Numbered from the stretch's first letter, positions 1 through 44,100 are shown. The stretch: 64,000 nt of DNA from Klebsormidium nitens (GCA_000708835.1 DF236954.1:174052-238051); one strand, 5' to 3'. A program made the numbers and translations. Notes: generated from the sequence alone by a model not told the origin.

Positions 1-3000
1 ACTTCACTAACGTCACCTGCCTTCCGTTTCGCACCTTCGGCCTCGCCGTTCTCTCTTCCTTCTCCTCTCGCACGCTCTCCCTCTGCCTCCTCCTCTCCTC
101 CACCTCTCTAAGCCTCTCTTCCTCCACTCTTGCCAATGCTCTCCTCGACTCTTCGGTCGACGATGGTTTCCCTCTATGCCTCGACTGCCCATTCAACGTA
201 GCTCCCGTCAACGGAAGCCTCGGAGCCCCTTTCTCAATGTCCACAACCATCGTCGCATCCACCATCACTCCCCTTCGACCCAATTCCTCTACCTCTTCCC
301 GTGTTAAATTCGAACCCGCCGCAACTCCGAACACTTTGCCCAAATCCGGGGACTTCTCCGAGTCGGCGCACGATCCGTTCAGCATGGTGCAAGCCCCTCC
401 CGCGCACATTTTCAACCTCGACACAAACACCAGTCCCGTGTCGATCGACCTTCCCGCATCCTTCGTGTAGAATTTTCTAAGACCATGCCTGCAACCAGAG
501 TTATGCATACTCCTTTCTTCAGACAGACGGAAACAACTGTCTTCTGCAATTCACCACGATATTTAGAAATATTTGGAAAAATATTTGACAACAATTGTTC
601 TTTGCTGTTCACAACAGTTTCTTCATTATGCTTCATTACGTATCTATGTCGATAACGTTTTCTCTCATCTCAAGTCCTGACGTTACGCGGCCAATCCAAT
701 ACTTCCATGACTTGTTCACCAGTTTGCATTGGATCAGCCTCTTGCAATCCAACAATTGGTTGTTGTATCTCACGTCTCCTACTAGCCTAACGTTTTCTAC
801 GGCCTTTTCGAAAATCAGCTTTTTGCACGACCAACTAAGGTCTCTGAATCCCACTTGATACTGCCAGGTCGAGCATATGCTATCAAACAACTTGTTAACT
901 TTTCTCAACTTGTTCACTCTCTTGCCCCAATACCCCCTCTTTGCCTCGCATACAACCATCCTAAGGATCTTTTCGGTAACATCTTCCGGGAGTGGCCATC
1001 CACTGCACACACCACAAATGAAAATGCGCTGTCAGATAACTCACTTGATGAACACCAATGGTCCAGACGTGGGCGTCAACCTTTCCTTCGAAAAGTCCTT
1101 CACCCCGCACGGCTCTCTTGCCGTGACTGCTCCGACACATGCAGCTCCATCGTCCACATCCAGTCTCGCAACCACCCAATCACTCAGCGCATACCTTTCC
1201 TCTCCAACCAGTTTCAGCTCCTCCTCTCCTTTTTTTTGCCCCACCCCTTCATCCACTTCCGCTTCCTTTTCAATCTCTCCTTCTCTTTGCATCCAAGGCC
1301 CCGCTCCACCCCCTCTTCTGTCCAACTCCTGCTCCTCTTGTCTTCTCGCACTACCCTTCTTCTTCGCTTCGTCCCACAACCTCCTTTGCTCTTCCACCTC
1401 GTCCACCGTCACCAGGAAACAACTCTCGTCCTCCGGTGTTTCATTCAGATCAACTTTCCCTCCCGACCTATACTCCCATCCCCTTGGCCACTTTTCCACT
1501 CTTCTCTGATCATGCCGATGTGTGCTGCTCTCTGTAAGCTCCCCTCCTTCAACTCCACCTTTCCGAATCGATGTCGACGGTCCTCCATACCCCACTCCCA
1601 GACTCTGCCTTCGCCGCCTTTTTCTTTCCCTCTCTCCTTCCTCCTCTTCCACTTCAAGACCCTCACCGCCTCCTCTCGCTCTCTCGAAACTTCTCTTCCG
1701 AGACTCCGAACGCATTTCCAGCTCCCCCAGGCTCGGGCCTCCGCCCACCACACCCGCCCTTTCAAACTCCATCCTCTGCGCAATCTGGATCAGCGCTTGC
1801 TTCGCCTGATTCTTCACCACCTGACCCGTGCTCAAATAGCCTCCTCCTTTCCCACCCTCTCTCGTCCAGAACGCCGCGTTGTCGACTTCGGCGAGGTTCG
1901 CCGTCGGGTTAATGAACCCGGCCAGCCTCATCTCGTCCTCCATCGCCTCTCTATTCGCGGGAAGGCCCCAGAGACCGATTTGGTGTGCCCTGATTCATTT
2001 GAAAAACTATATGTCATGTGTTCAAAATTCTGCATCTACAGTTTGGGTCCACACGATATCCTAGATGAAAGTGTTGTTGTACCTGTGACAACTACAGACA
2101 ATTAGTAAGTCCCGTTGAACGGGACTATCTCTATACGCACGAACAGTCTCACATTTTCTAATGAGCTTCAAGATCGTCTATGACAATACATTACAGTATT
2201 CAATCCAGTCGATTGTTGAAATGCAAAATCAGTGTGCCACTTCGTTTCTAATTAGTCCCGTCAGACGGGACGAAATCATATTCAAATTTCGGTCCGATAT
2301 TCCATATACAAAACTTACGTCCTTACCTGTGAAACCAGAAATCAGACCAATTCTTTGCTTCTCTCCACAGTTGGCCGTCTCCGAGTTTCGCGTCGTACCA
2401 GTTCTGTGAAAGTATAAAACCTCATTCAAGAGGCCGTTCATAGCTGAAATATGTTCTACATCGTGAACCGCTGGCTCGAACTCTTAACGAGCATATGGTT
2501 CAACAAAGCAAACAAACGCACAGACATGCAAATTGTGCGTCAAGCAACACAATATATAACTCACCCTCAAAGCCTCCTTTGCCACCTCTTGCTCTTNNNN
2601 NNNNNNNNNNNNNNNNNNNNNNNNNNNNNNNNNNNNNNNNNNNNNNNNNNNNNNNNNNNNNNNNNNNNNNNNNNNNNNNNNNNNNNNNNNNNNNNNNNNN
2701 NNNNNNNNNNNNNNNNNNNNNNNNNNNNNNNNNNNNNNNNNNNNNNNNNNNNNNNNNNNNNNNNNNNNNNNNNNNNNNNNNNNNNNNNNNNNNNNNNNNN
2801 NNNNNNNNNNNNNNNNNNNNNNNNNNNNNNNNNNNNNNNNNNNNNNNNNNNNNNNNNNNNNNNNNNNNNNNNNNNNNNNNNNNNNNNNNNNNNNNNNNNN
2901 NNNNNNNNNNNAAACGGCTCGATCTTCTCTAGCTTCCCTTCCCCATTGTACCCTTTTGCACATGTCACCTTGAGGTGGTGGCAGAACTCTTTCGTGCACT

Positions 3001-5446
3001 CCGTGCTCTCCGAAGGAAGCAACGCAGAACACACTGTTAGCATCCTCTTTTCCACCGGTGAGTAGGTCGACAATCGCATAAGGTACTCCGTTGGAGAATC
3101 CGACACTTTTTGACTGTCGACGTACGCCACCTCCCCGTACAAGTCCTTTCCAGGAACGGACATCCTCATGGCTGTACCAAGCCCTGATCCCATCCCCTCA
3201 ACGCTCATCATGAATGTGCATGGTACTTGGCCGCTTCCTTTCGGAACCTGCTCCGGCAGCTGCAAACAAACACAGTATTCTGAATCATGAAGACAGACAA
3301 CATAGTAACTTTGTACCCTGCACAATATTTCTTTCTCAGAATTCATTCCCTCAACGTACAATGATGGACCCTCTCAAAAAAAGAGTGCTTACTATCGAAA
3401 GTCGTACACTGTATCACGCGCTTACCAACACGTGCTGTATAAGCTTGAGCGGCGAGCGAGCCATGAAGTCCAACTCTCCATACTTCTGGGAGAAGTCGCT
3501 CCCGGAATTTCTCCGAGCGGCTCGACCAAGCTCGAGCAACTGCCTCGCCTTTCCCATGTCCGTCAACGGCCGAATCTTCTCAATTAGCCTGCACATTGTA
3601 CACCGAAAAAGGTTCAGATTCTATGATCAAGGCTTCTAATCCAACAAGTTTGCTTCTGCAATTTCAGTATAGATATTGATTTTAGGTAAAGTCCCGTTCA
3701 ACGGGACTTCACAGCATCGATGGTTGTACAAAAAACTTACTCCGCCAAGTCTTCACCCTTCTCTACCGCAGCTTTCAACGCTTTCTCCACCTCGCCGTCC
3801 CTGAACCGTACTGCAGACTGCAAACACGGAAACAAATATTAGCATATTGAGGTCTTAGTACCTTTGATAAACAACTATTAACCTTATTTAAAAGGCAATC
3901 ATCATCTATGAAACAGAGAATTAGACAATCTTACCTTATTCGACTCTCCTCCTTCTTTCAATGCACCGACCACGAGTTTCTCAACGTCTTCACCCCTTAA
4001 CGCCTCCTCGAGCTCGTGATTGTGTTCTCCACAATGCACCACCATCATCTCCTCCTTTCCACGGACTACGATTTTCCTTGCCTTACATTCTATACCTGTA
4101 CTAACCGCGAGTTGAGGACAAAAAGCGCAGACTCTCTTCCCAAACTCGTCAACTTTCTTGAATACCCTCGTGTTTCTACGGCCTTTATCCCTAGCATACC
4201 AGCAGGAGTCATTCTGGCAAACGTAACCTCCATAACAGCCAAACGACCTAACACTTTCTATGTTCTCAGCATCAATGCTGAGTGCGTAACTAGTCTTCCA
4301 GTGACTGCCTTTGTCCTCGGCTCTGTCTATCAGAGATGCAGATAAGTCTTTCACAAAAATGCAATCTCCTTGTAAGGGATAGGGAACGTGAGCAACTACT
4401 GGAATAGAAATGTCGTCCTTCTCGTATTTCGAAATAACGTCCTTCAATGCAGACGCTCTCTTTAGACCGCGCTTCAACAAGGCCGCTCCAACAATACTAT
4501 CTCTCACCTTAATTTCATCTCCTACTCTGTACGACTGCCTTCTCTCTGCTTCCTGTCCTGTGTGACAAATTCCCGCCTCCTTATCTTTAGGGACCTTAAA
4601 CACGGATTCCACTTCTTCTTCTCTAGCCCTCGCGCTGGTTCTCGCCCGGCCGCTGCTTGCACGAGAGTCCAGCTGTAAGGTTGTCCTGCTTTTCGCACCA
4701 GTGAGGAGCGAGCCCCCGCTTTGCCTACGAGCTAGAGTGTCCAAAAGGCCCCCTTTCGACTTGACACTGACGCTTGCCGCCTGCGAGCATCTCGTTCGCC
4801 CCTGGATACCTGACGTGCCAACACTCAACCGCCTGCGCGTCGAATCTTCTAGAGAGCCGGACGAACGGTTTACAGCTCGGGCGCTGCGGATGCCCTCCGC
4901 TAAGTAGCATCCTGGGCTCAGGCAATACACGAAGCGCCCGTCGAGCCACTCCGTTGATTCGTCCGCTCTACCATTCTCCCGACGCAATGTGACACTGCCC
5001 ACAAAGTCCGCACCGAACAGTTTCACCGACAGCACATCCTCCGTGACAATCGCCGACCCCCCAGGCGGTGCAAGAACAGCGTACTCTTTGCCGTTATCAC
5101 CACGAATAACGACATCGAGCTGGCTTTCGTCGTCGCTACCCTGCTCGATGTTTGAGGTCGACAACGATGGGCGGCTCCCTTTTGTCGGGGTGATTGGGAC
5201 CGAGTCAGGAAGGTGGCTGGACGCCCGGGAACGGGGGGGGCTCGGTTTGCGACCGGGGGCTAAAGGCGTCAGGTACATCTGAGCGCCTTCGGAAGCACTC
5301 TTCCGAGCCCCTTGGACGGAAACTTCGTCCGTGGTCACGTTCCGAACGGCCAAAGAAGGCGCGCTCCTTGCAGGATTGGAACCCTTTCCCGGACTTGGGT
5401 CGCGGTTCAAGAGAGCGTTCAGATAGGAGGACGATGACGACGCCAT
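1..5446 (-). CDS. MULE-like DDE transposase, spliced, 3' end beyond the window
   Basis: Phase-consistent exons 5446-3935, 3817-3741, 3588-3426, 3259-(N gap)-2565, 2403-2327, 1989-1045, optional 1002-640, and 488-<1 (open to the window edge). WRKY/GCM-like Zn finger CYGGYVCQNDSC...CAFC...CKARK...HCGEHNH. First Asp in EVAYVDSQK, followed by RLSTYSP...ESTE...F. Second Asp expected in the N gap after IEPF. WSDFWFHR, then the catalytic-Glu motif PTANLAEVDNA. Confidence 0.8.
2597..2911. other. Assembly gap (N run) inside a transposase exon
   Basis: Run of N. Confidence 1.
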
Positions 5447-6608
5447 CTTCTGAAAGAGAGAGAGAATTCTTTGTTAGAACTCCCGTTGAACGGGAGAAAA
5501 GAAAAGTGCACCTATCGAGTTTTTCAAATACTCTTTCTACCAAGTAATGCTATCGAGATTTGATATCGGAGCTTGGAGAAAAACGAGACAGTAACATTTC
5601 AAAGATTTGCAATGGAAGGAAAGGTCCCGTTGGACGGGACTTTTTGCAACAGCACAGATAAAAAACATTCAGCGAAGCACGCTGATAACGGATCGTTTGA
5701 GACTTTGACAATAGTCCCGTTAAACGGGACTACATGCCAGTGCAGAGCACATTCAGGATTTTGTGAACAGTTATAAAAGTCCCGTTAACAAGGACCCAAA
5801 ACATATATACTAACCATTTTAGATACCCTCAAGACAAGATTTTCAATGCATAATTCCAGTTGAACGGGAGTACAAATACGTCCAGAAATGAAAATTATAT
5901 GAAAAAGGGGCGTATCAGAAGCTGACGTCAGCGTGACGTACCGGGCTGCGCGAGGACTGCCAATGTCGACAATGCAACAATGAAAATGACGAATTATGTG
6001 GATCAAGCCGTTCTATCAAGTGGCTGAAATGCGTACCTAATCAAAGTGTGTACATGGCTGCAGCCCTAAAAAAAGCAGTCATCCATCGTCCATTCCAGAG
6101 CCACGTGGCTTGCTACGCAACCAATTAGAGGGCCAGAAAGGGGATCTTATCTTGTCCGGACCAATCAGAAGGCAGAGTATCTCATGGTTGAACTACAGTC
6201 TGAAAAATCTAACATTGTAAAGTACACATTGCAGTGTAACAATATACATAATGTGTCCCAGGAGACTCTACGGCCAGCCACCTCCCGTCCGACAGGGGTC
6301 TTCCTAGGAACTCCTAGGAACTTCCTCATTTCCACGGTCGTTGGGTAGAGAGGGTCCCTTTTTGGTGCACGCGCGTTTCGAGCAGCTTGGCTGCGGTAAC
6401 GGTTGCGTTACCGCTCCCAATAATTGAATTCTGAAATTTACTGTTCTGGAGAGTCCCGTTGCACTGCGCGAGCGTGTAAAACCCTTAGCGCGGCCGCGAA
6501 GCGTTCTGAACGGTAGGTAGCTAGCTGCTGGCTTTGAAGATCATTTCACGCAACCGCCTTGGCCATTTAGTCCCGTTCAACGGGAGTTTTCTCTAAAATG
6601 GAGTTGCA
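5447..6608. promoter_or_regulatory. Divergent (bidirectional) promoter region between the transposase and cargo gene 1
   Basis: Separates head-to-head ATGs at 5446(-) and 6609(+). Contains six palindrome copies, CCAAT boxes (6121, 6161), TGACGTCA (5923) and GCACTGCGCGAGC (6461), which recurs at 17760. Confidence 0.55.
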
Positions 6609-9600
6609 ATGTCATTGAAAAGATGCCGCGATGGAACTACAGCCGGCATACTAGAGTGGTTTGCAGATTTCATATACCCAGATTTTCAACCTGGCCTTGA
6701 TGAGGCTGTTCTGTGGCTGCGCTCAAATCCAAGAGCAGAGGGTTCATTTTACGGTCTTCACCTGCTGAGGTGTGGAAAACGGTGGTTCTTCAAGCGAGAG
6801 ATCCTCCTGCAACAGCAGCTTGCTGAACTTAGTGAATCTAGTGAAAGCGAGAGTGAGACCGACAGTGAGTCTGACTCTGGATACAGCGATTGTGTTATTG
6901 TCGAACCAAACATGGAGCCCCAGGAGGAAGGGAACCCGTCCCAGCTTAGAGAAGGCACTCAGGTAAGAAACAACCTCTCCAGTTTTCCTCCCGTTCAACG
7001 GGACTTTTTGAAAGGAGGAAGTTACCTACTAGAAATTAGAGTGAGCTTACAAGTCATAGTTCTGCGCAGATGTCGGGTTACATTGTGAGGTTTCTTGTCA
7101 GGTTCTGCACAGTTTTCTCAGTCCACGAGGTAAAGTGTGTTGACAATGTCTACCGAACATGTTGACTGGTATGCAGAACTACATTAATACTGTCAATAAG
7201 ATAGACACCTGAAGACTGTAACTGGAGTATATCTGTTCCCAGAATATCTGTCAATCAGGTAACCCTGATTATGCACAGAGCTGTATGCATGGTGTGTGTG
7301 GCTGATGTTTCTGCTCGTTATGTTAGGTCCCGCTGAACGGGACTTTTCTGCAGCTGTATTTGGGAAAAGTTTGTTTGATCAGATTATGAATCGGTCTGTT
7401 GTGTGGATTTTCTCTATCTGATATCTATCGTAGTTTGTACAGTCTGTATATCTTGAAGGTATCCAGTTTTTTCTGGATAAGAGTAGAGTGCAAGCTGCGT
7501 TTCTGCATGACATTCTTCAATTGAACCAGGTGTGCCCGATTAAGTTAGTCCCGTTGAGCGGGACTAAAGCAAAACCAAATGCATCTCTATGGTGTGAACA
7601 ATAATATGTTTTGTCTAGATCAAATGACTCAAGGTAATCAGAAGGTTCCCTGGTTCAATGCATGGAGTTTTGGATTTGAAGGCCTGTCTGGTCGGACGCT
7701 TGAAGAAACTTGTTTTGAAACACAGTTTCAACACATTATTCCATTCAATTTCAGTCAACTGCTCTGCCAGGCTGCCGCAAACGAAGGAGCCACCAGTGCC
7801 CCATCAATGACTGCATCGGACAGTCAGGTAAGTTATTAAATCAACTAGACTAGACTTCCTGGACTTCCAGTCTTGTTGAATTGAAATCTCTCACAGAGTT
7901 TGAACTGGCTGAAGGTGCCACGAGTGCTTGTATGATCTGCTGATCTACTTCGTGATGAGTCGTGTCAAATGGAAAAAAGGGGTACTCTGAGAATATATGC
8001 TTCTCTTTTCATCATGATGGGGTTCAGATCTGAACAATCATGACAATTTTATCTGAACTGGGCAAGGTGTAGGTCTTCGAAACTGGAAATTCTATTCGAC
8101 AGTATGTATAGATTGAAAGCACCAATCTCAATCCATGTCTTGAACATTGCACAGGTTCCAGCTACCGCCGCTGCAAACCCTGATTTCATGGCAGCTGAGC
8201 TGGACGATGAGCCAATGAATCAAGCTGCACTGAATGACCAGGTAAGTACCTGAATGGGTTCCTCAGTGAAGTTTAGAACTGCCTCTGCCTGCTTTGAGCA
8301 TTTGCTCTTTTGAACAATCGGTTATGTCAATATAGATAGTGGTGACGTTTGGTCTGATGACATCTTTGCCTGTCCAGATTGACGACACCCTGAGAGACCT
8401 TGAACAGCTCAACGACGCTGACTTCGGAGAGCGATCAAATTGGCAGGTAAGAATCATTAACGCTGACCTTGCAACTACTGGTGTCAAGCGAATATTGAGC
8501 AAGCTCTAGCTTCTGTGTCTGTAATTGATGTCCGATTGCTATCGTTCATTCAGATTTTATGTTTTCTAATCATCCTTCATTTTCTGCAGCCCGACTCTGT
8601 TGACGAGCCGAATCCAAAACGCATCAGATTCGGTGCGCCCGGGAAGGCCCTGGGTTCAGCAACCGGCCTGGGCACAGCGGCACCTCTGAAGGTGCGTAGC
8701 TCTTTGCACGGGAAAGATCGTGAAGACCACTGTCTAACTCGGTGTGCTCGATCGCGCTCGATCGTGTTTGTTAACATCCATCAGACTAACCTGTAATCAC
8801 GAGCTGAGAGTATTGAAAGGTTAAATTTCTGGTAAGAAAAGCATGATTGTAAGCCGTGTGCATTGTAAAGATTGATGACATGATTGTTCGCTATGAACTC
8901 TTCTGCAGTGCCTTGTGAAAATTGTTGGTCCCTTATCCTGGTTCCTCACCACGCAATCATTAAAGGCTTCTCCTGTTCGTTTCGATGCAGAACGCGATGA
9001 TGAGCGTCCCCATGGACCCCTCGCTTCGGCCGACAGAACCGGAAAAAAGTGACAGTGATGAGGAGACTGAAGACGACGAGGACGAGAAGGACGACCCGAC
9101 GTTTGGTGCAGTTGTAAGCATTTATCTCAACTTACTGTTACTAATGTTTGTACGCAAANNNNNNNNNNNNNNNNNNNNNNNNNNNNNNNNNNNNNNNNNN
9201 NNNNNNNNNNNNNNNNNNNNNNNNNNNNNNNNNNNNNNNNNNNNNNNNNNNNNNNNNNNNNNNNNNNNNNNNNNNNNNNNNNNNNNNNNNNNNNNNNNNN
9301 NNNNNNNNNNNNNNNNNNNNNNNNNNNNNNNNNNNNNNNNNNNNNNNNNNNNNNNNNNNNNNNNNNNNNNNNNNNNNNNNNNNNNNNNNNNNNNNNNNNN
9401 NNNNNNNNNNNNNNNNNNNNNNNNNNNNNNNNNNNNNNNNNNNNNNNNNNNNNNNNNNNNNNNNNNNNNNNNNNNNNNNNNNNNNNNNNNNNNNNNNNNN
9501 NNNNNNNNNNNNNNNNNNNNNNNNNNNNNNNNNNNNNNNNNNNNNNNNNNNNNNNNNNNNNNNNNNNNNNNNNNNNNNNNNNNNNNNNNNNNNNNNNNNN

Positions 9601-12600
9601 NNNNNNNNNNNNNNNNNNNNNNNNNNNNNNNNNNNNNNNNNNNNNNNNNNNNNNNNNNNNNNNNNNNNNNNNNNNNNNNNNNNNNNNNNNNNNNNNNGGA
9701 CCTTAGAACATGTCAGGAACTTCTTTATAGATTGAAATGTCAAAATCTGTTTGGTACTGAACTGCTGTTGCCAACAGCTTGATTGATCTAAAATAGTATC
9801 TTGTTGTTCTTATCTTGCAGCCTGACGCCGCTGGGCTCGATCAGGTGATGGCGAAGTACTCGGGGGAGAAGAAGGGTCGAAAGAGCAAGGGGATGTCGGC
9901 TGTCGACGTTGAAAATGCGCGAGCGGCAGAGAAGGCAAGGAAGGTGACGGTGAAGGTGAACAAGATCAGCATTCTCCCCAAGCGGTTCCACAAACACCCC
10001 GACGTACACGACGGCTGCATAGAGGTCCCCCTAGCGATGTGCAAACCCGCCTCTGAGCTGCCAGTCTTGAGGCCCCCGTCTGAGCCGCTGGCTGAGAGGG
10101 TGCGCATTTCGGAGCGGGTCCCCACAAAAGCGGCTATCCGGCTGCAAACCGACGTCTTCAACAACCACGGGTACGACCCGAACAAGGGGTACTTCGTGGG
10201 GACGGCGACCGCGTTTGGAGACTGGATCAAGCCGATAACGGACGTGGACAGGGAAGCCATGTGCGAGCCTCTCCGCAAGGACCTGGAGGAATGGGAAGCC
10301 TTAGTGGTGAAGCGGGGGGTGGTGGATAACGACCCTTTCTACCAGTGGATCGGGGCGCACATCCTGTACCATTTCCTTTTCCTGGCAGACGGCAACACCA
10401 GGTGACCAGTCATGGTATAGATAACTTCAATTTCTTACTTTGAATGCAACACTTTGGTGTCTTCAGTTGGTGAAGGTCCCGTTCAATGGAACCTGGCGTG
10501 TCCAGACAGTCGTCCATGTTCTACAGAGATCGAAACTCAAACACAGAATCGAAACTGTTGGCGCCAAAGAGTTTGCAGAAGGTCCCGTTCAACGGGACCT
10601 TTGATTTCATACATGCAACTTTTCTGGCAAGGTAAATTTTTCATCAAATCCCTTCTAGACTGGTGTACAGTACTCAGGGCCACACCCTAAAACAACTCGG
10701 CCAGGCTCAAATCCCTTTGCTTGGCATCGATGCACATCGTTGCCCTTCTTGCAGCATGAAAAGGTCCCGCTAAACGGGAGTCCTTCGGCAGCAATAGACT
10801 CCCATTTGTTTGCTGTTTGCTGAAGGTTGGTTGTAGTGGACCTGTCAGGTTTAGGATGTCACGAAAACTCATGACTAAAGTGGTTCGGCAAGGTCCCGTT
10901 GAACGGGACCTTGTCTAAACAAAACGTCATCCATGTTCTGCAATAAATAAGTACTCGAACTTTGTAGTGAAACCGATGGCGCCAAAGCTTCTGCAAAAGG
11001 TTCCGTTCAACGGGACCTGTGATTTCATACATGCAACTTCTGGCAAGGCATTGTGGTCGAAAACTCCCTTCAAGACTGGTGTACAGAACTCAAGGCCACA
11101 CCCTAAAAGAACTCAGCCAGGCTCAATGCCATGTGCTTGGCATCAATGCACATCGGTGCCCTTCGTGCGGCATGAAAAGGTCCCGTTGAACGGGAGTCCT
11201 TCGGCAACTGTAGATTAACTAACAAATGAAAGGCGCCTCTGGTTCAGGTTTTGATATACATTGCAATTCATTTCAGAACTGATTTGTGGTTACAACTTCA
11301 AACAAGTTAAGGTCCCGTTGAACGGGACCTTTGCAGATGGAGCTGGAGCTTTTTTTGCTCCAGGCATAAATGGTTTGCAATGTGGTAAAACAAGGTTTCA
11401 TTCTCAATCCTCAAACGGAGTGATAGAGGTGATGAAGTATCAGTCTTACAGGGGCTGGATCGAGCCTGGATCCTTTTTGAGTGGACTTTTAAAGATTGGA
11501 AGTTCAATTAAGAAGCGGTTTAATGGTCTGACGGTCTGCCAGTTAGATAGTCCCGTTGAAAGGGACCTTTTTTCTTGGCACATCCAAGGTAATTGTCTAT
11601 CAATTGAACATTTGAATCTTCACATACAGCAACTTTATCAGTCACAACGGCTTTCAATAAACAATACCGGTTTTGTGAGTTCTTGATCCGAGGTTATCGT
11701 ATTTTGCAGAGAGGAAGGCTGGGTGGCTGCGATCGAGAAGCTTGTGGGCATCATCAAGACAGTTCCACGACCCCGGATGGTGGTGTTCGAGATAATCGAG
11801 AAGAACTGTCGCCAGATCGCTCTCCTCTCAGAAGAGATCAACAAGTCGGAGCTGGACGCAAAGGTCGTTACGACCCCGCTGCAGAAGCTGGCGTTGCTGC
11901 ACGACAAGAACAGGATGGAGACGGAGGAGGTGAAGAAGTGGATTCCAGCATCGGTACGTTATCAAAGTTAAACAAAATTCGACAGGATTGAGCCAAGATT
12001 TTGTTCCTTGATTCTTGCAGTGCGTTTGATAGAGTCGCACTGTGATGCATTTCGATCTTGGTAGCAACCTTTCTCATTATCTCGCTAGATTGAACTCGTA
12101 GACTCCTGCATCAGTGTCACTTTGAAATAGAATTTCATTCGCGAAGGTGATTCTCGCACAGATCAGAGCATATGCTAGCTGTGAAAAAGAAATCATTCTG
12201 TGCATATATCATTCTTCAAACATGATCTGCTGGAATTTGTGAACTCCAAAAGTTGTAACCCTCTTACTATCCTATTTCGCAGTCGATGGCGCTCCTGAAG
12301 GAGAAGCTGAACATCAACCTGCTGAGGAAGAAGAAGGCCGACGCCTGCCGGCACAATGTCCTCGTGTTCGTCTTCATGGAGCAGCCTCTCCTCCTGAAGA
12401 AGCTGCTCGACTTCCAGTTTGGCACGGACCTGAAAACCGGGGAGGACCTGGGCCGGTTCTGGACGGAGAAGGAGAAGAAGACGGTGATCGAGATCGAGCA
12501 GAGGAAGATGCGGAAGCAGGTCTCCGCTGCCGGATTTGAGAAGAGGGATGGAGTGGGGTTCAACTACTGGGAGGCAGACATCCGGAAGATGGTGGAGCTG

Positions 12601-13101
12601 CCGGAGCTCAGCCGAGATCTGACAAACCTGGAGATTCTCACTACCCTGAAGGAGCTGAACCTGGCAGCCTTCCTGGACGTGACAGTGCTGGGGCACCTGA
12701 AGCTGCGAAGGGCCGATCTGCAGAAGAAAGGCCTGGAGCTCACAAAGGACTCGCTCGATCCATTCTTCACGTCTGTGAAGGCTCTCCAGGTGGCGGGGGA
12801 ACTGGCAGTCGACTGGCTGGAGGAGCAGAAGCTGGTAGAGAAGAGGCCGGGGGATCGGCTGCCTGGACAGATGGGGAAGTGGAAAGGGAAGACGCTGGCA
12901 GGGCTGATGGCAAACAAGATGCCCCTCTGGGACTGGATCAAGACGCTCATCGAGGGGGATTACTCCTCCGTCTTTGAGCACCCGTTCGCGTGGATGGGGC
13001 AGAAGGGTCTGTCCTTCAAGTCCATGCTGAACAAGGAGATGAAGGATGGTGGAAAGGCCAAGTGCCTGGAGGGCATGTGGCGGCGTCTCCTGGTGCTGTG
13101 A
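6609..13101 (+). CDS. Transposon cargo gene 1, hypothetical protein (>=800 aa); acidic low-complexity N-half, NLS-like PNPKRIRF, possible degenerate Fic-like motif
   Basis: Phase-consistent GT-AG exons 6609-6962, 7771-7827, 8155-8241, 8378-8446, 8590-8691, 8991-9113, (N gap), 9821-10401, 11710-11953 and 12283-13101. The phase-2 junction ACC AG|A GAG gives ...DGNTR-EEGW. The later exons are strongly GC3-biased. Confidence 0.7.
9159..9697. other. Assembly gap (N run) in cargo gene 1
   Basis: Run of N. Confidence 1.
10561..11205 (+). repeat. ~230-bp direct repeat (10561-10790 and 10979-11205), each unit bracketed by two palindromes
   Basis: Both units read gcgccaaag..GTCCCGTTCAACGGGAC..gatttcatacatgcaact..agactggtgtacag..ggccacaccctaaaa..gcatgaaaaGGTCCCG..AACGGGAGtccttcggca. 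Confidence 0.93.
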
Positions 13102-14230
13102 GTGCAGCAAGAAAGTTTTGCCCTAATCAATTTGCCAAAAAAGTATCGGATGTTTCTGTTCTGAGTTTCCTTCTGTTTGCTGTCGCGACTTCGTAGGTAG
13201 CTTTGCAAGGCAGAAATTCCGGATCTTTTTCTCAGAGAATCGTCACACTGATAGTTGTAAACGAAACTTAGACAGTTGTGGAAAGCCCCGTCCACTTTGT
13301 AAAATTTTTGCTGAGTCAGATTCGAAAAGCGATTTTAGACTGATCTAACCTGCTGTTGAATGGTCCCGTTGAACGGGACTTTCGTACCTCACATTTTTCA
13401 GAACATAAGAGATATTTGTGCTGTATTGGACTGTGCTCGATTGCAGCTGATCTCAGTAAGTCCCGTTGAGCGGGACCTTTTCTGTTTGAACTGTACAAAA
13501 GTACATCGTTTTTGGACACAAGAAATAGTAACCTTTTACAGATTGCAAGGTTACATGTCAAAACCCGATGTGATTGTGGCTCTTCACATTTTAATGAAGG
13601 CTGGAAGTTTGAATCATTTGAGAAACGCTGCTCTGAATAGATTTAATGTCCTGCAAATTTGGAAAGGGTGCTGTAAACAGATCATTAAACTGTGTTTTGT
13701 GCTGAACTGTGTGAAGTGACATTGCGAAAGGGTCTTGCGTTATTTACACCAGGCTTGATTCGAATTATCATTGCTTTTATTTTTAATGATGTTCCTGCCA
13801 CAAACCACTTAGGATCTGTAGAAAAAGACAATGCAGAATGGTTAGTTTGAGTCCCGTTGAACGGGACCTTCTTTATCTGGATAGGATGCCTCAGAAGTAA
13901 AGCCTGGAGAGTAGCAGGTGGAAAAAACAAGACTCAATCAATGACCACTAGAGATTTGCTAGTAACGAGATTGCTAGTCAGGACCGGCACAGGCAAAAGT
14001 CGCTTTTATGCAGCCTGTTTTCAAAAGGTCCCGTTGAACGGGACCTTTCAAAAGCGCCAACTTTTGTTTGAATATCTTTTAGCGACGGTCGGGGTTCAGA
14101 AATGCACCGGGAGGCTTTGGTTATCAGTAAAGAGCCAGGTTGATTGGTGTCTAGTTCTACGTTAGTATCAAAACCATATTGAATCGCCACACGAAACCAA
14201 GTTTTAACCTTTGTTTTTTTTCAATAACAG

Positions 14231-16565
14231 GTACTTCCGAAGCTGCTTCCCCCTGCAGCTGTCTGACCTGCCCACAGACATCGAGGACAAGTCTTCCCTC
14301 AAGACGATGGCGGAGTGGGGTTACTCCGGCCTCCCCCGAGTGGTGAAAAAACACGCCATGGACTGGGCGGGTCTGGAACCGGCAGCAGGCGCAGAGCTGA
14401 AGTGGTCCGCTGACAAGCAGACCTACTTCGCGGAGTGGGAGATCAAGGCGTTGTTCGAGGGCGAGCGGCCGGGGAAGAAAAACTGGAAGGACAAAGAGGT
14501 GACGGACGGGCTGGGGAACGGGCCTCTTTCGTTGCAGGCGACGGTGGTCCTGGGGGTGGGCTGGGAAAACGATTCCGGGGGTGTTCTGCCGAAGTGCATT
14601 CCGGCAGAGAGGACGGACCCGGAGATAGAGCCGGGATTCGTGCAGTTCGTGTCACTGAGGAACCTGGCGCAGAGGGTGGGGAAGCCGGGGCCAGAGGTGA
14701 TAGGGGAGGAGAAGGAGCCTGCACCGAACGAGTCAGGTGATGAAGAAGAAGAGGTGGAGAAAGAAGAAGGGGAGGAAGAGGAAGCTGTCGAGAACGAGGT
14801 GAAAGAGTTGGAGGGAGGAAGCGGCGTTGGGTTCCTGAAATTCTTCGGGCCAAAGGGCGTGACAGTGGTGCCCAAGGTGAAAGAGATCCTGGAGGCGTTG
14901 GGTTACGCAAAGGAGCTCGGAGAGAAGAAGGAGATGGCTTTCGACGTGGAGAAAACTGGGGTGGACATGACGGTCTTTTTCGTGCGGCCAAGGTCGAAGA
15001 AGGTGGCGGAGATCGACGGCTCTGAGAAAGAGATCCGCTGGCTGCCTGCGGAGGAGTTTGTGAGCGCTGTGTCGGAGAGAATGGAGAAGGTGATGGCGAA
15101 GGGGTCAGTGGCTGTGGTGGTAGCCCCGCCGGCGCTACCGGAGGCGTGGATGGTGGGGCTAAAGAAGATGCACGCGTCGACCTGGGGCTTCAGGCTGGTG
15201 GACAAGGTGACGTTGTTGACACTGCTTATTTTATATTCTTTTTGGAGTTGGGTTTAGTAATTTTAGTGCCAACATGAATTTGAAATACATCTTTGAATAG
15301 ATGGTGAATTGGAAAGGGGAATTTGACGTGTAAGAGGTAGTGATGCGGGGATTTTCAATAAGAACTTGCAAAGCTGAAGATTTGAAATTCGTTGCACTGT
15401 AAATACATGGATCTGATGGTTTAAAAGGGACCTTGCAGGACGGCGACCCTCTGTGGCTGCACGGCCACGACGGTACGTACATGGAGGTGTCGTACTGGAC
15501 GCCGGCTGAGGCACATGGAGAGGTGAAGAAGACGGGAGGGGTTCTGCGCACACCGGAGGAGATGTGCAGCTGGCCGTTGTTCCAGAGGGGAGGAAAACTG
15601 GAGGTAAGTATAGTGGAGATATGAGTTCGTTCGATAACAGGGCTGGTTAAGGATTCGAAGCTGAGAAATAGGAGTGCGTTTGTCTGGAAAGAGGGTAATC
15701 TTATTCCGGTAGCTTTGCGGAAACTGTATGCGATGTGTCTCGTTTGAAAATTCACATCTGTTATCACGACTGTCTGTTGTGGTAGGTAGAGTTGATGTAG
15801 ATGAGCTTCATGGATGTCGAATTTTGTGGCTCAGATGCAGGCACAACAAGTTTGTGATTTGATAAGGAGATAAGAGATGTGATGTTCAAAATTCGAATGT
15901 ATATACAACGTTCTGATACGTTTCGCATAGTCACTGTTTCCATGCTGTTGCATTTCTGTCTGGTGGTTTCTGGTGCGCCGCTCCAAGATTGGAAAGGGGA
16001 AGCGAAACAACTAGCAAGGTCCCGTTGAACGGGAGTAACAGCCAGTATATCGAACCATACATGAGAAGTTGTTAACCTTCTTTTGCAGACTTACACCCTC
16101 TTGTCGGAGCACGCCTACGACCTGCCGCGCGAGTTCTGGAACGACGCGCTGGACAAGACCATAGACGCGGCGGCGTCATCGCCGTCGGCGATTGTGTTCC
16201 AGGAGGAGTACGGTGGCGCGTCGGAATACTTGTCGAGGCTGGGAGTGGATCTGCTGTCGGTGTTCTTTGCGGGGGGGAAGAAGGGAGACTTTCTGGAGAG
16301 GGAGTCAAACAAAATCACGTGGGATGAGGAGGTGGAGGTGGAAGAAGGAGGGGTGAAGGTCAAGATGACGATGGGTTACAGAGACCAAGAGGATGAAAGC
16401 GAAAATGAATCAGGAGAGGACAAGATGGAGATGGATGGAGAGGCAAAGGGCTTGGGGAAAGAAGCAAAAGTTGGAGACGAGAAGAGAGTGGCGACGGAGC
16501 TGGAAGAAGCGCCTGTGAAGCTTTCCCCGATGATGACAAGGTCAAGGAAGAAGGTATCGAAGTAG
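14231..16565 (+). CDS. Transposon cargo gene 2, hypothetical protein; possible degenerate amino-DNA-methyltransferase-like fold; 5' exon(s) unresolved
   Basis: Exons ~14231-15206, 15439-15603 and 16089-16565 join in phase 0 via AAG|GTGACG, TGCAG|GAC, GAG|GTAAGT and TGCAG|ACT. Strong GC3 bias and acidic tracts. The start codon was not determined. Confidence 0.65.
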
Positions 16566-18334
16566 ATGGGGTTGGTGTGGTGATTTGAAAGAAGGGGATT
16601 TAGAGGAAGTTGGTTGCAGGAGTTGTGAGGGAAGTTGGAAGTGGAGTTTGCGACCTTGAGAACCAGATGCACAATTGTGTAGGTGTAGATTCGAGAATGC
16701 ATTTTAGACAAAGACCTTTGAAAGGCAAATGCACGAATGTATAGGGGTAGACTCGAGTATGCATTCATGATGAAGGACTTACGAAAGTAGAGGCAACGCT
16801 GTATAGGTATAGGTTCGAGAAGCCTGAGAGATGAGGAAGTGTGTTGAAGATGAAAAATGTCTGATGAGGTGAAATGCAATTGACACTGGCATGGAATTGG
16901 ACAATCTAGAATGCATCGGCAATGGTAACATCTGTTGAAAATGCATTGTCCAATGAATGTTGTCATAGGCCTGGGTATGTGAGTGGCTTTAAAGACAAAT
17001 TGACGCATGAAAGAATGTGTTGACAATAGGTTGGACAAAGGATATATGATGTAAGACGTGTATGAATCGCGATCCTGCAGAATGTACGACTCCTTCATAA
17101 ATACCTTGTGATGCAATGCTGATGAATCATAGACCAGCACACATGAAGGTCCCGTTGAGCTGGACGTTTTGCAAGCTGTGCCTCATGCGTTCGAGACGTT
17201 TTGTGGCCCTTTCAGAGGCGAGTCGTGCAAATGTCGAAGCACAAATTGAGTCGTAAAGATCATAGGGTGTCTCATCTCGGTGGTGCAATAAATACATTGA
17301 CTCAAAAAGGAATGTCAGCGGTCTTCGTGGGTTCTTGAAGTCCCGTTCAACGGGACCATTTTTTACTCAGAGAGCTCTGCTTTTTTGGTCCCAGAGTGGA
17401 AAAAGCGTCTAAGCAGAGGATAAAATGACAATCTTCTGGTCCCGTTGGACGGGACCTTCCCCCGATACCTAGGTTTGCCCCTTCAGTAAGTAGAAAGCTG
17501 GTAGAAATGAGAATTTGAGATGCTCACTGACGTCAGCATGACGTCAGCAACTGCTTCTCTTTTATTTTATTTTTGGAGAAATTGTTTTTCGAATTTGAGG
17601 GTAAAAATAAAGAAAAAAAAAAAAACCGGCGAATTTTGCAAAAAAAAACTTTTAAAAAGATTGTAAAACTACAATATAAAACTACATACATATAGGATCT
17701 CCCTCATCTCGCCCCGCGAAGCGTACACGTCATAGGTGCTGCAAGAGAAGCTTACGTACGCACTGCGCGAGCATGAGCGTCGTCTGACTGAAAAGTCTTG
17801 ATACGGTCATTTTTCTTTGTTGACCGTACTCAAGCTGTCACTGTCAGTGACTGAGCACTGTTACTTTCAAGGAGCGTGCTGGTAGTGTGAAAGAGGGAGT
17901 AGAGGAATTCTAGTCGGCTACAGTACTTGCAACATCAGTTGAGTAGCTTGGCAAGAGTCATGGTCTTACCGTCAAGACTGTTGTCAAGACTGACAAGACT
18001 ACTACTGTAGCCCGCTGGGACGAAATCAAAAGTAAAAAAAGGGGTGCAAATCAACGCCCACTGAGTCCTTTCCAGATGGTTGTAAGTTTCAGGGGATCCA
18101 AAAAAGATATGTGATCCAAGTTGTGCAATATAGCCGGATCTACTGCCAAGTCGAAGACCAGATATAACTTCTCTTCGCCAAAACAATTGTGGTGACAAGA
18201 GGGAACTTGCTACACCTAGTACAGCTCGGTAAACAGATCCCACTTCTCTTCTAGAGAAAGATTCTGAGAAGGGCGCACGTTTGCGGCAATTCTGGACCCT
18301 CGAAGTTGCTGACCTACATCAGCAGTCGTGCAGG

Positions 18335-41100: not shown

Positions 41101-44100
41101 CTGACGCTTCAAGTACTTTGCTTTCAGTGCTTGCTTTCGACCTCCCAGTCGAAGATTTCCCAGGCTGCGACGGGTTCCTCTATCGACCTTCAGTCTGCAT
41201 GCCTTCGTCTGCTTTCTTAGAAGCCTTGCTTTGTATATGCAGTTCCTTTTCTGCTGTCAGTCTGTTCGACGAGGCCTCCCCTTGCGAGTGATGAATTTTC
41301 CAAATCCAACGCTGATTCGCTGATGAAACACACGAAATCGAGCTTTTTAACCCTGACGCACAGTGGAGGCCTCTCCATTTCCCCCCTTCTTTTCTGTGTT
41401 GCTCTTCGCTTTGTGCTTGTTCGGTGCTTCGGAGCATCTTCGGTCATTCAACGGTCGTAGAAAACTAGGACAATCCGGATCCTATGCCTTGATGATTGTT
41501 AGACTCAGCGAGTCGGACAATGACTACCGGATTGCCTGGGTTTTCAAAGTCTTGACTTTTCGTGTGAAGATTTTTTTGGTTGCTCGTCGGTGGTCTCGAT
41601 CACTCCTTCATTTGTTTTTCAAGCAGGATAGCTCGATTCTCAAAGCAGATTATTGCAAAGCCAACTCTCTTGTGGCAGCAGATCTGACCGTTAAGGCACT
41701 CCTGATCTCGGTGATGATTATCGATGACGAGACTGAGCTCAAGCTGGTTCTGCTGGTGGCCTGGCCTGCTGCGGCCGCGTTTTGCGGTCGTGGCAGTTTC
41801 GGGCCGTCAGTCAGGCCAGCCACCTGCCGCAAGGCGGGTGGCGAAGACGTTAATTCGAGGCATTTGTCTGAGAGAACCGGAGAATAGCCTTGGGTCTTGG
41901 GGGTGTCAAACAATGTCTCAGAAGTTGGAGGAAATAAAATACAGAATGATTAGTGGCCTTCAGAACCATAGAAGCTCGCGAGTTCGATGCACCTTGCAAA
42001 GTATGCCGATGCCTTCTTTTGACTTTGTGGGTTTGTCAAGGCCGTTTTCAAGTTGTGAGTCCTCGCAGCTGATGTGCAGGGTTTCTATGCGACTCGCAGG
42101 AAAAGCGGTTTGCCGTGATCTGACCTGTTGTAGTTCTTTGCTCGCTCGGTTGTAACACTCGAGGCCTCTGCAGCTAGTGGATGATGAGACACCCGTATCA
42201 CGACGGTCATCAGAGCCAGGGCCGCGGTCCTCGACAGGGCTGATAACATATGGAACTTCTTCTGACACACAAGCCGCAGGCCGGCTGCAAGGAGTGATCT
42301 AGTGTTGAAAGTTTGATACACCGTACTTTCTGTGTTCCACGATTGTTGATTTGGAATTTGTTTGCTTGTGTTTGTGAGGAGATCGTAAACCTGAACCGTT
42401 CAAGCTTGCCCAATGATGCTAAACATCTTCTTTCGACTGAGCGACCCCTCCACGGAGGGCGAATGCTGTCAACCAAACCGCTGATTAATTATTGACTGAG
42501 GGCAAGCAAATAACCAGAACAGCCGATTGCATTCTCGGACGAACTTTACTGCCTCCTCTTTACTTTGGTTGCGTCTTTGTTTTGTCGGACCTTACAAGGT
42601 TTGATTCAGTGCGCTACTGGTTGCCTTGCTTCTACTCTTCCACGTAGATATGCGAGCCAGGTTTTTGATTCGGTTCCTGTTGCGTTCCATTTGCTGAGGA
42701 GTGCCCTGTGACGATACCCTTATGCTTATTTCTGAGCGCCCCTTCGGGGCGATCTGCTGACAAATATCCGCTTAGTACCTGAGGGCACTGCATCTGTGAG
42801 AATGATTCCGATTCGTCGGCGCTGTCCATGTTTCTCTTCTGGTTCAATGTCATCAGGCAGATGTCGGCCGCATATTGCTGACGACGAGCTTTGCTTTTGA
42901 GGGGTCATCAGGTTGTCTGCGTTCTGAGTACGTGGTCCATCACGTTTTGGTCTGTTTCGACTCCTTAGTCCCTGCAACACCTGCGGTCGCAACCATGCCC
43001 GTCTGAACTGGCGCCGGTCCATTCGCCCGACATGCTGATCACGCCTCTTTTACTGCAGATCAAGTGGCGGGATCGTCCAGACCGTCAAGTCTCAGCAGAC
43101 AGCTGGGCCCGCGAGAAGCCGCGTCACTGCTGCGCGTGAGTCGCCATCCTTCAGCTTTGCTCTCGATGTTTCACGTCTTTGTGGCATATTGTGATCCGGC
43201 AATGGTGAGAATCCTGGTTACAAAGGAGTGCATCTCAGTTGATCGCTAGTCAGCTTGAGCTGGAGTTGTACGGTTTGGCAGTGATTCAAATCTGGAGAGT
43301 GCCTGATCTCGTGCCACGTGTCGTGCTCTATGTGGACAGACGTCACGACGGTGATGTTCGTTGCCAACTTCATCGGCATCGTCTGCGCCCGGACCTTGCA
43401 CTACCAGTTCTACTCCTGGTAAGCCTTGCCGCAAGCGCCTTCGCCCTAGTTTTCTTTCTCAGTTGCGGTAGTCCCTGATTTTGCAGTGTTATCAGGTCGA
43501 AGCAGACGACTTTGGCTCCTTTTGGTTCTCTTCAATTGAGTCAGCTTCCCTTGCTTCTTCATCTTACTCGGAGTACTGTGTCACGCAATTCCACCTTAGC
43601 TTGAGAGAACTAATTCTCTTGAGGTTTCTCGAGTCCTCTTGAATAAGTTGAGCGATCCTTGTCGCTGCTGAACTCCAAATTCGAGAAGAGTGTATGGCCT
43701 TCGTTGACCAACTTAGCGTTCATGAGTTAGCGCATAAATGGCGGCGCCTTCGATTCGACACCGCCATTCTGCTGAATCTCGCTTCGTCCAAACGGGCAGG
43801 ATAGCGAGATCTGGGCACATCTTTAAAGCAACCCAACCTTGCACTCATTGAAGGGATTTGTTGCAGGTACTTCCATATGCTGCCGTACCTACTTTGGCGG
43901 TGCCCGTTTCCAGTTCTTGCTCGGTAAGAAACGTTGCCCTCGTCAGACATGTGGGAACAAGAATAGATAGTCACTGCCATTCGTCGTCTTTTGTCTTAGC
44001 AATTTTCTCCCCTTGTAGATTGCGTCCTGCATCTCTTCTTTGTGGATCAAGACAAGTGCCACGCTGATTGGTTTGGAATGCGCGAGCAGGGTGTCAGAGC

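Follow-up and report, generated by a model that had tools for sequence, protein, structure and literature searches.

The window analysed here is a 64,000-nucleotide stretch of the genome of the streptophyte alga Klebsormidium nitens (GCA_000708835.1 DF236954.1:174052-238051), and its first part is occupied by a large (>17.7 kb) Mutator-like DNA transposon with two divergently transcribed genes. A 17-bp palindrome recurs throughout this element. Judged from their sequence, the palindromes probably form an array to which a sequence-specific protein encoded by the element would bind as a symmetric dimer, each subunit reading one half-site of 8-10 bp and leaving the single central base unread. Binding at high density would mark the element as "self", either for activation or anti-silencing, in the manner of VANC21 on VANDAL21 or of the AtMu1c transposase at its inverted repeats, or, as an alternative or added purpose, for assembly of the transposition complex. 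New sites would arise mainly by local duplication, and selection would act on site density. A first-pass annotation of the window had described the palindromes as perfect dyads kept by compensatory changes and co-varying flanks, and had proposed that a hairpin or cruciform or a dimer-binding site was being preserved. The dimer-site option is well supported by the results below, if indirectly, and the hairpin option is disfavoured, as the arms assort independently.

The array was delimited by scanning the 64-kb window with the pattern GTCCCGTTNAACGGGAC at up to three mismatches, with dinucleotide-preserving shuffles as background. The palindrome, GTCCCGTT-N-AACGGGAC, has 29 matches compared to a shuffle mean of 0.11. 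All except one lie within positions 2109-17455 (15.3 kb), at a density of about 2 per kb through the element; the other 46 kb of the window contain a single weak match, at 53077. The count of 28 is a lower bound, because assembly gaps at 2597-2911 and 9159-9697 could each hide further sites. Column counts over the 28 copies give a consensus that is symmetric into the flanks (A-A-R on the left and Y-T-T on the right), which suggests that the operative palindrome extends beyond the 17-mer to about 21-25 bp. The half-site consensus in the window is A-R-GTCCCGTT. The central base is free (G in 17 copies, C in 7, A in 4), and the adjacent positions 8 and 10 are conserved in 27 of 28 and 25 of 28 copies, on par with the stem. 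At least one position is unpaired in 16 of the 28 copies. The sites quoted in the first-pass annotation are all right, including GTCCCGTC-A-GACGGGAC at 2255 and CTCCCGTT-G-AACGGGAG at 5480, and so are the flanks it listed (CAAG..CTTG at 10889-10913, AAAG..CTTT at 14024-14048, TA..TA at 5712 and TTA..TAA at 7545).

Related elements were collected with phmmer. The query, the 514-residue exon-1 product of the transposase gene (3902-5446, minus strand), returned 35 proteins, and the contigs encoding them were then retrieved. The related loci are K. nitens scaffold DF238116.1 (L126, 11.9 kb) and the Logan contigs L127, L129, L130 (19.6 kb), L131 and L135; L133 and L134 are further short Logan contigs among the relatives. 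The head-to-head gene pair is common to the window, L126, L130 and L129, and palindromes of the same architecture number 19 in L126, about 20 in L130 and about 12 in L129. Their half-sites are specific to the element: GTCCCGTT in the window and L126, GTTCCGCT in L130, GTGCCGC in L135 and GTTCCGTT/GTTCCTTT in L131. The arms of the relatives, for example GTTCCGCT, GTGCCGC or TTGTCCCGTT, are altered alike on both sides. Thus, position pair 3/15 is C-G in the window (22 of 23) and L126, T-A in L130 (18 of 18) and L131, and G-C in L135 and L127, and pair 7/11, which is T-A in the window, is mostly C-G in L135 and L130. The flank of L126 has an invariant TT, with T at position -1 in all 38 of its 38 half-sites; this position is mostly A in the window. 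In a tree of the exon-1 proteins, the sister pairs are window/L126, L130/L135 and L127/L129, and the motif appears to follow this transposase tree in part.

As far as these loci indicate, symmetry is maintained per element lineage and not per copy. A single sequence per element that is the same on both arms and differs between elements is what would be predicted for a homodimeric reader evolving with its element. A constraint on structure alone is disfavoured by the same pattern, because it would let each copy have its own pair and does not require one sequence common to all copies of an element. In L131 (2023-2220 and 4331-4347), three sites read GTTCCGTTGAAAGGAAC, with the CpG lost from one arm, and one symmetric site reads GTTCCTTTGAAAGGAAC; the half-site may be in transition in this lineage.

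The independence of the two arms is evident within the window. Right-arm letters were permuted among the 28 copies, and Watson-Crick pairs were counted for each position pair. Perfect dyads number 12 of 28 compared to 10.4 expected under random re-pairing of the arms (P=0.23), so the statement that the motif is kept as a perfect dyad was too strong. No pair in the window covaries; pairs 1/17 and 8/10, which carry the supposed compensatory changes, give P=0.105 and 0.103 from one event each. Nor do the flanks co-vary, as the Watson-Crick counts of pairs 0/18 to -7/25 equal the permutation expectation and the extension of pairing beyond the 17-mer sums to 29 compared to 24.9 in permutations (P=0.27). 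The double change of the outer bases at 5480 is an ordinary one. The outer base has changed from C to G in six right arms and from G to C in two left arms, and with so many changes one such coincidence is expected. The double change at 2255 (T8C and A10G) does not compensate within a stem either, because a 17-mer with a one-base centre can fold only with positions 8-10 as its loop, and both changes fall there. The A-to-G changes at 5624, 7548, 13460 and 17439, which had been taken for G-T wobbles, were correctly recorded, but they are plain transitions without strand bias. When sense-strand mismatches were pooled over three elements, 11 were of the G-U type, 10 of the A-C type and 17 were transversions. 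Essentially, the arms vary independently and flank pairing equals the shuffled expectation, and the claim of covariation is refuted to that extent.

The same outcome was obtained across elements. Four elements together have 19 perfect dyads compared to 17.1 expected (P=0.28). For a test of single pairs, sites were chosen on the eight invariant positions only, the four variable pairs were left free and a stratified permutation was applied; the pooled elements have 205 paired cells compared to 198.1 expected (P=0.08). The arms assort independently even at highly polymorphic pairs: pair 7/11 of L130 is freely mixed (CG 7, TG 6, CA 3, TA 2), and pair 3/15 of L129 is complementary in just 3 of 11 sites. 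No excess of pairing over re-paired arms was found in the window, L129 or L130. These results bear on the explanation in which the palindromes serve as structures, either as cruciforms in DNA or as hairpins of RNA or DNA that form in introns and in single-stranded intermediates, with their pairing kept by selection. Each site is indeed able to form a hairpin with 7-11 bp in the stem and 3 nt in the loop (-7 to -12 kcal/mol, z about -4 to -5), and some copies are symmetric variants, namely 2255 and 5480 of the window and 4803, 4888 and 9749 of L126. However, with pairing no better than random re-pairing, with G-U and A-C mismatches in equal measure on the sense strand and with the supposed compensation at 2255 located in a loop, such a structural role is quite improbable. 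Reading of the sequence by a protein is favoured, because the half-sites assort independently and the loop positions 8 and 10 are conserved. The observation of the first-pass annotation is therefore real but was over-read, and its compensatory-hairpin interpretation is not supported. More generally, palindromic symmetry, even with some symmetric variants, is not sufficient proof of compensatory evolution.

The location of the sites provides further evidence. Exons were mapped by tblastn with the K. nitens protein KFL_011670010 (P0004) and by tblastx against L126, L127, L129, L130 and L131. Conserved coding blocks account for 42% of the readable DNA, yet not one of the 28 sites touches them (P about 2e-7; with just 20 sites counted as independent, P about 2e-5). 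The same avoidance is seen in L126 (0 of 19, P about 4e-4) and in L130 (0 of 20, P about 3e-3). In the transposase gene, two palindromes (2109-2125 and 2255-2271) lie in an intron at about 1992-2322, as placed by tblastn and tblastx, and one (3691-3707) lies in a short intron at 3594-3733 (GTAAGT...TGCAG). Nine palindromes (5480, 5624, 5714, 5779, 5854, 6570, 6988, 7327 and 7548) occupy the divergent promoter and 5' non-coding region at 5480-7564, in which tblastx against the relatives found no conserved coding block. In the partner gene, eight palindromes are found at 10476-11566 in the intron between exons B1 and B2, four (13363, 13460, 13851 and 14028) at 13363-14044 in the B3-B4 intron, and one at 16019-16035 in the B6-B7 intron. 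The last three (17149, 17340 and 17439) span 17149-17455 in the 3'-terminal non-coding DNA of the element, whose apparent right end is near 17700. Some 150 bp inside this apparent end, TGACGTCAGCA is present twice in tandem (17528-17549) and is followed by A-rich tracts; it includes a CRE-type palindrome, TGACGTCA.

Corresponding regions are occupied in the relatives. The L126 homologue of intron 1992-2322 also holds two sites, and the remainder of that intron is unalignable; the homologue of intron 3594-3733 holds sites at 8383 and 8482; and the L126 interval 5455-6364, which is equivalent to 5480-7564 of the window, holds six. In L130, too, sites lie past the 3' ends, there of both genes. 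The introns carry canonical GTAAGT...TGCAG ends, and between the window and L126, with about 52% identity in their exon-1 proteins, introns align at the palindromes alone. Because the introns align only there and exons are avoided, the sites must be maintained or continually renewed and are not decaying insertions. The proposal that selection and not simple decay acts on these repeats is thus supported, with sites persisting in otherwise unalignable sister introns and avoiding coding blocks in three elements.

One visible route of site renewal is tandem duplication. The B1-B2 intron contains a 417-bp tandem duplication whose units, 10466-10798 and 10883-11214, are 83% identical and hold three sites each. 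The arms of the duplicated sites differ at 4 of 48 positions, and the centre base differs in two of the three sites. Within the duplication, 8% of arm positions have changed compared to about 17% in the flanks, which is the direction that selection on the arms would give, with too few positions for significance. A different sort of region is found at 7565-10475, the longest palindrome-free non-coding stretch (2.9 kb, including the gap 9159-9697). The open reading frames (ORFs) in it have no conserved counterparts in L126 and L130, and the interval from the transposase gene to exon B1 is about 1.6 kb longer in the window than in the relatives. This stretch may be a nested insertion or may contain lineage-specific 5' exons.

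Compared to an element-encoded reader, a host protein is an unlikely explanation for the array. Such a protein could be a transcription factor, an insulator, or a silencing or methyl-reader factor for CCGTT/AACGG, either exploited by the element or targeting it. In favour of a host protein, the motif contains two CpGs, and the CpG observed/expected ratio is lower in the non-coding DNA of the element (0.70) than in host DNA (0.87). However, the motif is essentially absent from the 46 kb of adjacent host DNA, and a half-site that differs in each related element is awkward for a single conserved host factor. Retention of the CpGs does not single them out in any case. As the first-pass annotation had noted, they are mostly kept, but not specially so, since 6 of 112 CpG-position cells have changed compared to 21 of 336 at the other motif positions.

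It is very improbable that the palindromes are selfish short repeats, of the REP or MITE kind, that were inserted repeatedly and are now decaying. What speaks for such repeats comes from outside the alga. Metagenome and viral collections were scanned for the 17-mer; most matches there are single and due to chance, and four bacterial-looking contigs (L008, L052, L060 and L111) bear REP-like arrays of the same 17-mer core, so that repeats of this sort can evidently multiply in other genomes. These contigs have no coding similarity to the element. Furthermore, the palindromes of the window have neither target-site duplications nor common flanks beyond about 25 bp. They are restricted to the element, missing from the host DNA next to it and excluded from exons, the motif is lineage-specific, and the same introns are occupied in sister elements despite the divergence of their transposases. 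The arrays in the four contigs, together with those in L010 and L083, were considered as possible relatives of the element and were rejected, as they look bacterial and REP-like and have no coding similarity to it. In the four contigs the core arrays have directional flanks, TCCGGA-GTCCCGTTGARCGGGAC-TGKTTT (L008:866-1878, L052:1460-2214, L060:2985-3968 and L111:3135-3802), and the neighbouring genes look bacterial, with an MlaE-like permease at 2697-3518 of L052 and a HipA-N-like ORF at 2543-2878 of L008. These metagenome arrays look like bacterial REP-type repeats that have the core in common by coincidence.

If the array is read by an element-encoded dimer, as we favour, there are two candidate readers within the element. 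The zinc finger of the transposase comes first, though with less than an even chance; the conserved partner protein is a serious second candidate; and a host factor would be the least likely of the three. The Mutator-like transposase gene lies on the minus strand at 1-5446 and runs off the start of the window, so that the left end of the element is outside it. Its exons are at about 5446-3926, 3838-3734, 3593-3417, 3283-2912, 2418-2323, 1991-1044, 947-637 and 493 to below 1. The gap 2597-2911 cuts the core exon, and the sequences on its two sides are collinear with one L126 gene, in the same order and on the same strand. Residues 409-531 of P0004 align to 3280-2912 and residues 614-640 to 2406-2326, and the spacing across the gap is 494 nt in the window compared to 427 nt in L126.

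The finger, of the GCM/WRKY type, is encoded at about 4450-3905 (minus strand), at the end of exon 1 and ahead of the catalytic core. Its Cys/His positions are invariant or nearly so in the alignment. The AlphaFold2 model of the finger (pLDDT 88, pTM 0.80) has as its best match in the PDB the GCM domain on DNA (1odh_A, E 3.5e-4, probability 1.0) and as its second the WRKY33 DNA-binding domain (probability 0.97), and the nearest clusters in the ESM Atlas are SWIM-type proteins, for the N-terminal part, and GCM proteins. Fingers of the WRKY-GCM1 type are the DNA-binding domains of transposases of Mutator-like elements (MULEs) (Babu et al. 2006, PMC1702500), and by alignment and model the transposase here has an N-terminal domain of this type. 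The GCM domain reads an 8-bp site, ATGCGGGT (PMC2172107). This site has the length of one half-site and shares the CGGG core with it, an analogy that is suggestive only.

By eye, P0004 and the window share a motif order typical of MULEs: D (YVDSQK), D (ISADAAGG), CxWH and SNLAE. Searches for known domains returned little. Pfam at relaxed thresholds was blank for 28 exon and ORF pieces, except for a weak FLYWCH hint on the finger (E 0.12), and a sequence search of the PDB with the transposase gave no match. No C-terminal SWIM zinc finger was matched in P0004 or the window exons; a SWIM match was obtained only in a distant relative, P0028 (E 3.5e-4 to 5e-4). The 19.6-kb L130 contains no long terminal inverted repeat. 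A word-index protein search with the 514-residue exon-1 product found nothing, the same search with the P0004 core found only itself, and an exact-sequence look-up of the window ORF returned no matching record. The annotation of this transposase gene family looks incomplete. The deposited model KFL_011670010 (L126 6456-11818) omits the part of exon 1 that encodes the finger (window 3905-4420), and it also omits an exon that is conserved in L126, L127, L129 and L130. This second omitted part, at 947-637 of the window, gives weak F-box-like hints (E about 0.2).

The partner gene, head to head with the transposase gene, extends over 9857-16529 on the plus strand, with exons B1 (9857-10411), B2 (11717-11956), B3 (12280-13104), B4 (14283-15179), B6 (15436-15594) and B7 (16083-16529). 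It is conserved in L126 and L130, and exon B1 is conserved in L129 as well. The gap 9159-9697 lies in its 5' region, upstream of B1, the first conserved exon, and the sequence to the left of the gap has no homologue. Exon B1 ends in an invariant motif, DGNTR. This motif faintly recalls the DGxxR motifs of ParB/Srx-type domains. Pfam detected no ParB-like or methyltransferase domain in B1, B3, B4, B7 or other ORFs, and PDB profile searches with the exons taken singly were blank. A fold search with exon B1 gave no match (best Z 2.3, from a weak model with pLDDT 60), a word-index protein search with B1 gave nothing, and protein-atlas feature searches with B1 and B3 gave no informative match. The weak B1 model neither supports nor rules out a ParB-like identity. 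Homology to VANC was likewise not detected, with no Pfam family in any partner exon and no sequence or fold match.

Several observations weigh against an array read by an element-encoded dimer. First, the transposase, the partner protein and a host factor are all candidate readers of the sites. Second, the partner protein has no recognisable domain in Pfam, PDB-sequence and fold searches of its exons taken singly, and the MuDR/MULE core PF10551 had no Pfam match at E up to 10 in P0004 or in the exons of the window, L129 and L130. Third, the sense-strand centre base of sites in introns and untranslated regions of the window, L126 and L130 is G in 33, C in 15, T in 2 and A in 1, and the excess of G over C (P=0.013) is not predicted by a symmetric homodimer site. 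Fourth, L126 exhibits nominal covariation, uncorrected for relatedness, at pairs 1/17 (P=0.025) and 3/15 (P=0.029) and in the flank extension (P=0.003). This covariation probably derives, at least partly, from the duplicated neighbour sites 4803/4888 and 9749/9859, and a palindrome-generating copying step may also be behind it. Finally, the comparison of lineages covers only seven related loci, and several of them are short.

Among known systems, the closest counterpart is the VANDAL21/VANC21 anti-silencing system of Arabidopsis (Sasaki et al. 2023, PMC10398659). VANC21, which is encoded by a MULE, binds a 9-bp motif that occurs in VANDAL21 at high density, both in introns and in intergenic and terminal non-coding DNA; related VANDAL families have different motifs, and the motif grows by tandem repeats (Hosaka et al. 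2017, PMC5735166). The K. nitens element is likewise Mutator-like with an accessory gene, and its motif is dense, private, lineage-variable and multiplied by tandem duplication. Of the features that define VANDAL/VANC-type systems, two were thus found: a dense, element-specific motif that is rare elsewhere, and a motif that differs between related elements, the latter in seven loci compared at the sequence level. The differences are equally clear. Compared to the 9-bp directional motif of VANDAL21, the motif here is a palindrome of 17-25 bp, in which two inverted half-sites flank a centre of constant length, 1 bp. The element resides in a streptophyte alga, and Pfam detects no similarity for its partner protein, VANC-type domains included. 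By analogy, the element would work like a VANC-type system, but homology does not place it in that family.

Other systems share some of these features. The transposase of the MULE AtMu1c alone binds and activates its own copies (Sasaki et al. 2026 preprint, 10.64898/2026.08.24.746577). As in WRKY-GCM1 MULE transposases, the transposase here has a GCM/WRKY-type finger, which is modelled with confidence and precedes the catalytic core, and such fingers read about 8 bp, the length of one half-site. Unlike AtMu1c, which binds terminal inverted repeats, the present element has dozens of internal sites, and unlike WRKY-GCM1 MULE transposases, its transposase has no Pfam MULE or SWIM match. Some giant transposons of algae (Ectocarpus Sola1-1 and others) encode ParB-like and DNA-methyltransferase accessory proteins, for which binding and marking of their own element has been proposed (PMC12477816). 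Our element resembles them in its algal host, its giant size and its large accessory gene, which is encoded on the other strand from the transposase gene, but searches of its partner exons, taken singly, returned neither a ParB nor a methyltransferase domain.

The subterminal transposase- or TnpA-binding repeats of En/Spm and Ac, and bacterial REP sequences, are also multiple short binding motifs that occur in both orientations within one element, and REP sequences are, in addition, short G+C-rich non-coding palindromes. The motifs of En/Spm and Ac cluster within a few hundred bp of the element ends, whereas the sites described here are spread over the entire element and occupy introns in both genes. 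REP sequences are prokaryotic and have stems with structure-preserving variation, which was not found here.

Tentatively, these comparisons would be consistent with a streptophyte-algal MULE lineage that independently evolved a VANC-like "private address", in which operators co-diversify with an element-encoded dimer reader and each sub-lineage activates or protects only itself. To our knowledge, Arabidopsis is as yet the only organism in which experiments have demonstrated transposon self-recognition by a private motif and a private reader, for VANDAL/VANC, Spm TnpA and AtMu1c. If it also operates in Klebsormidium, with a palindromic operator and non-homologous proteins, this would suggest that the strategy is either old or recurrent in the green lineage. 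The element would then provide a compact operator-reader pair (17-21 bp, two half-sites, defined variants) for studies of how transposons and their target specificity co-evolve, as well as a candidate orthogonal DNA-binding module.

Elsewhere in the window, in host DNA and unrelated to the element, positions 41283-41361 gave the only Rfam match at the gathering score, to the box C/D snoRNA SNORD36 (36.6 bits).

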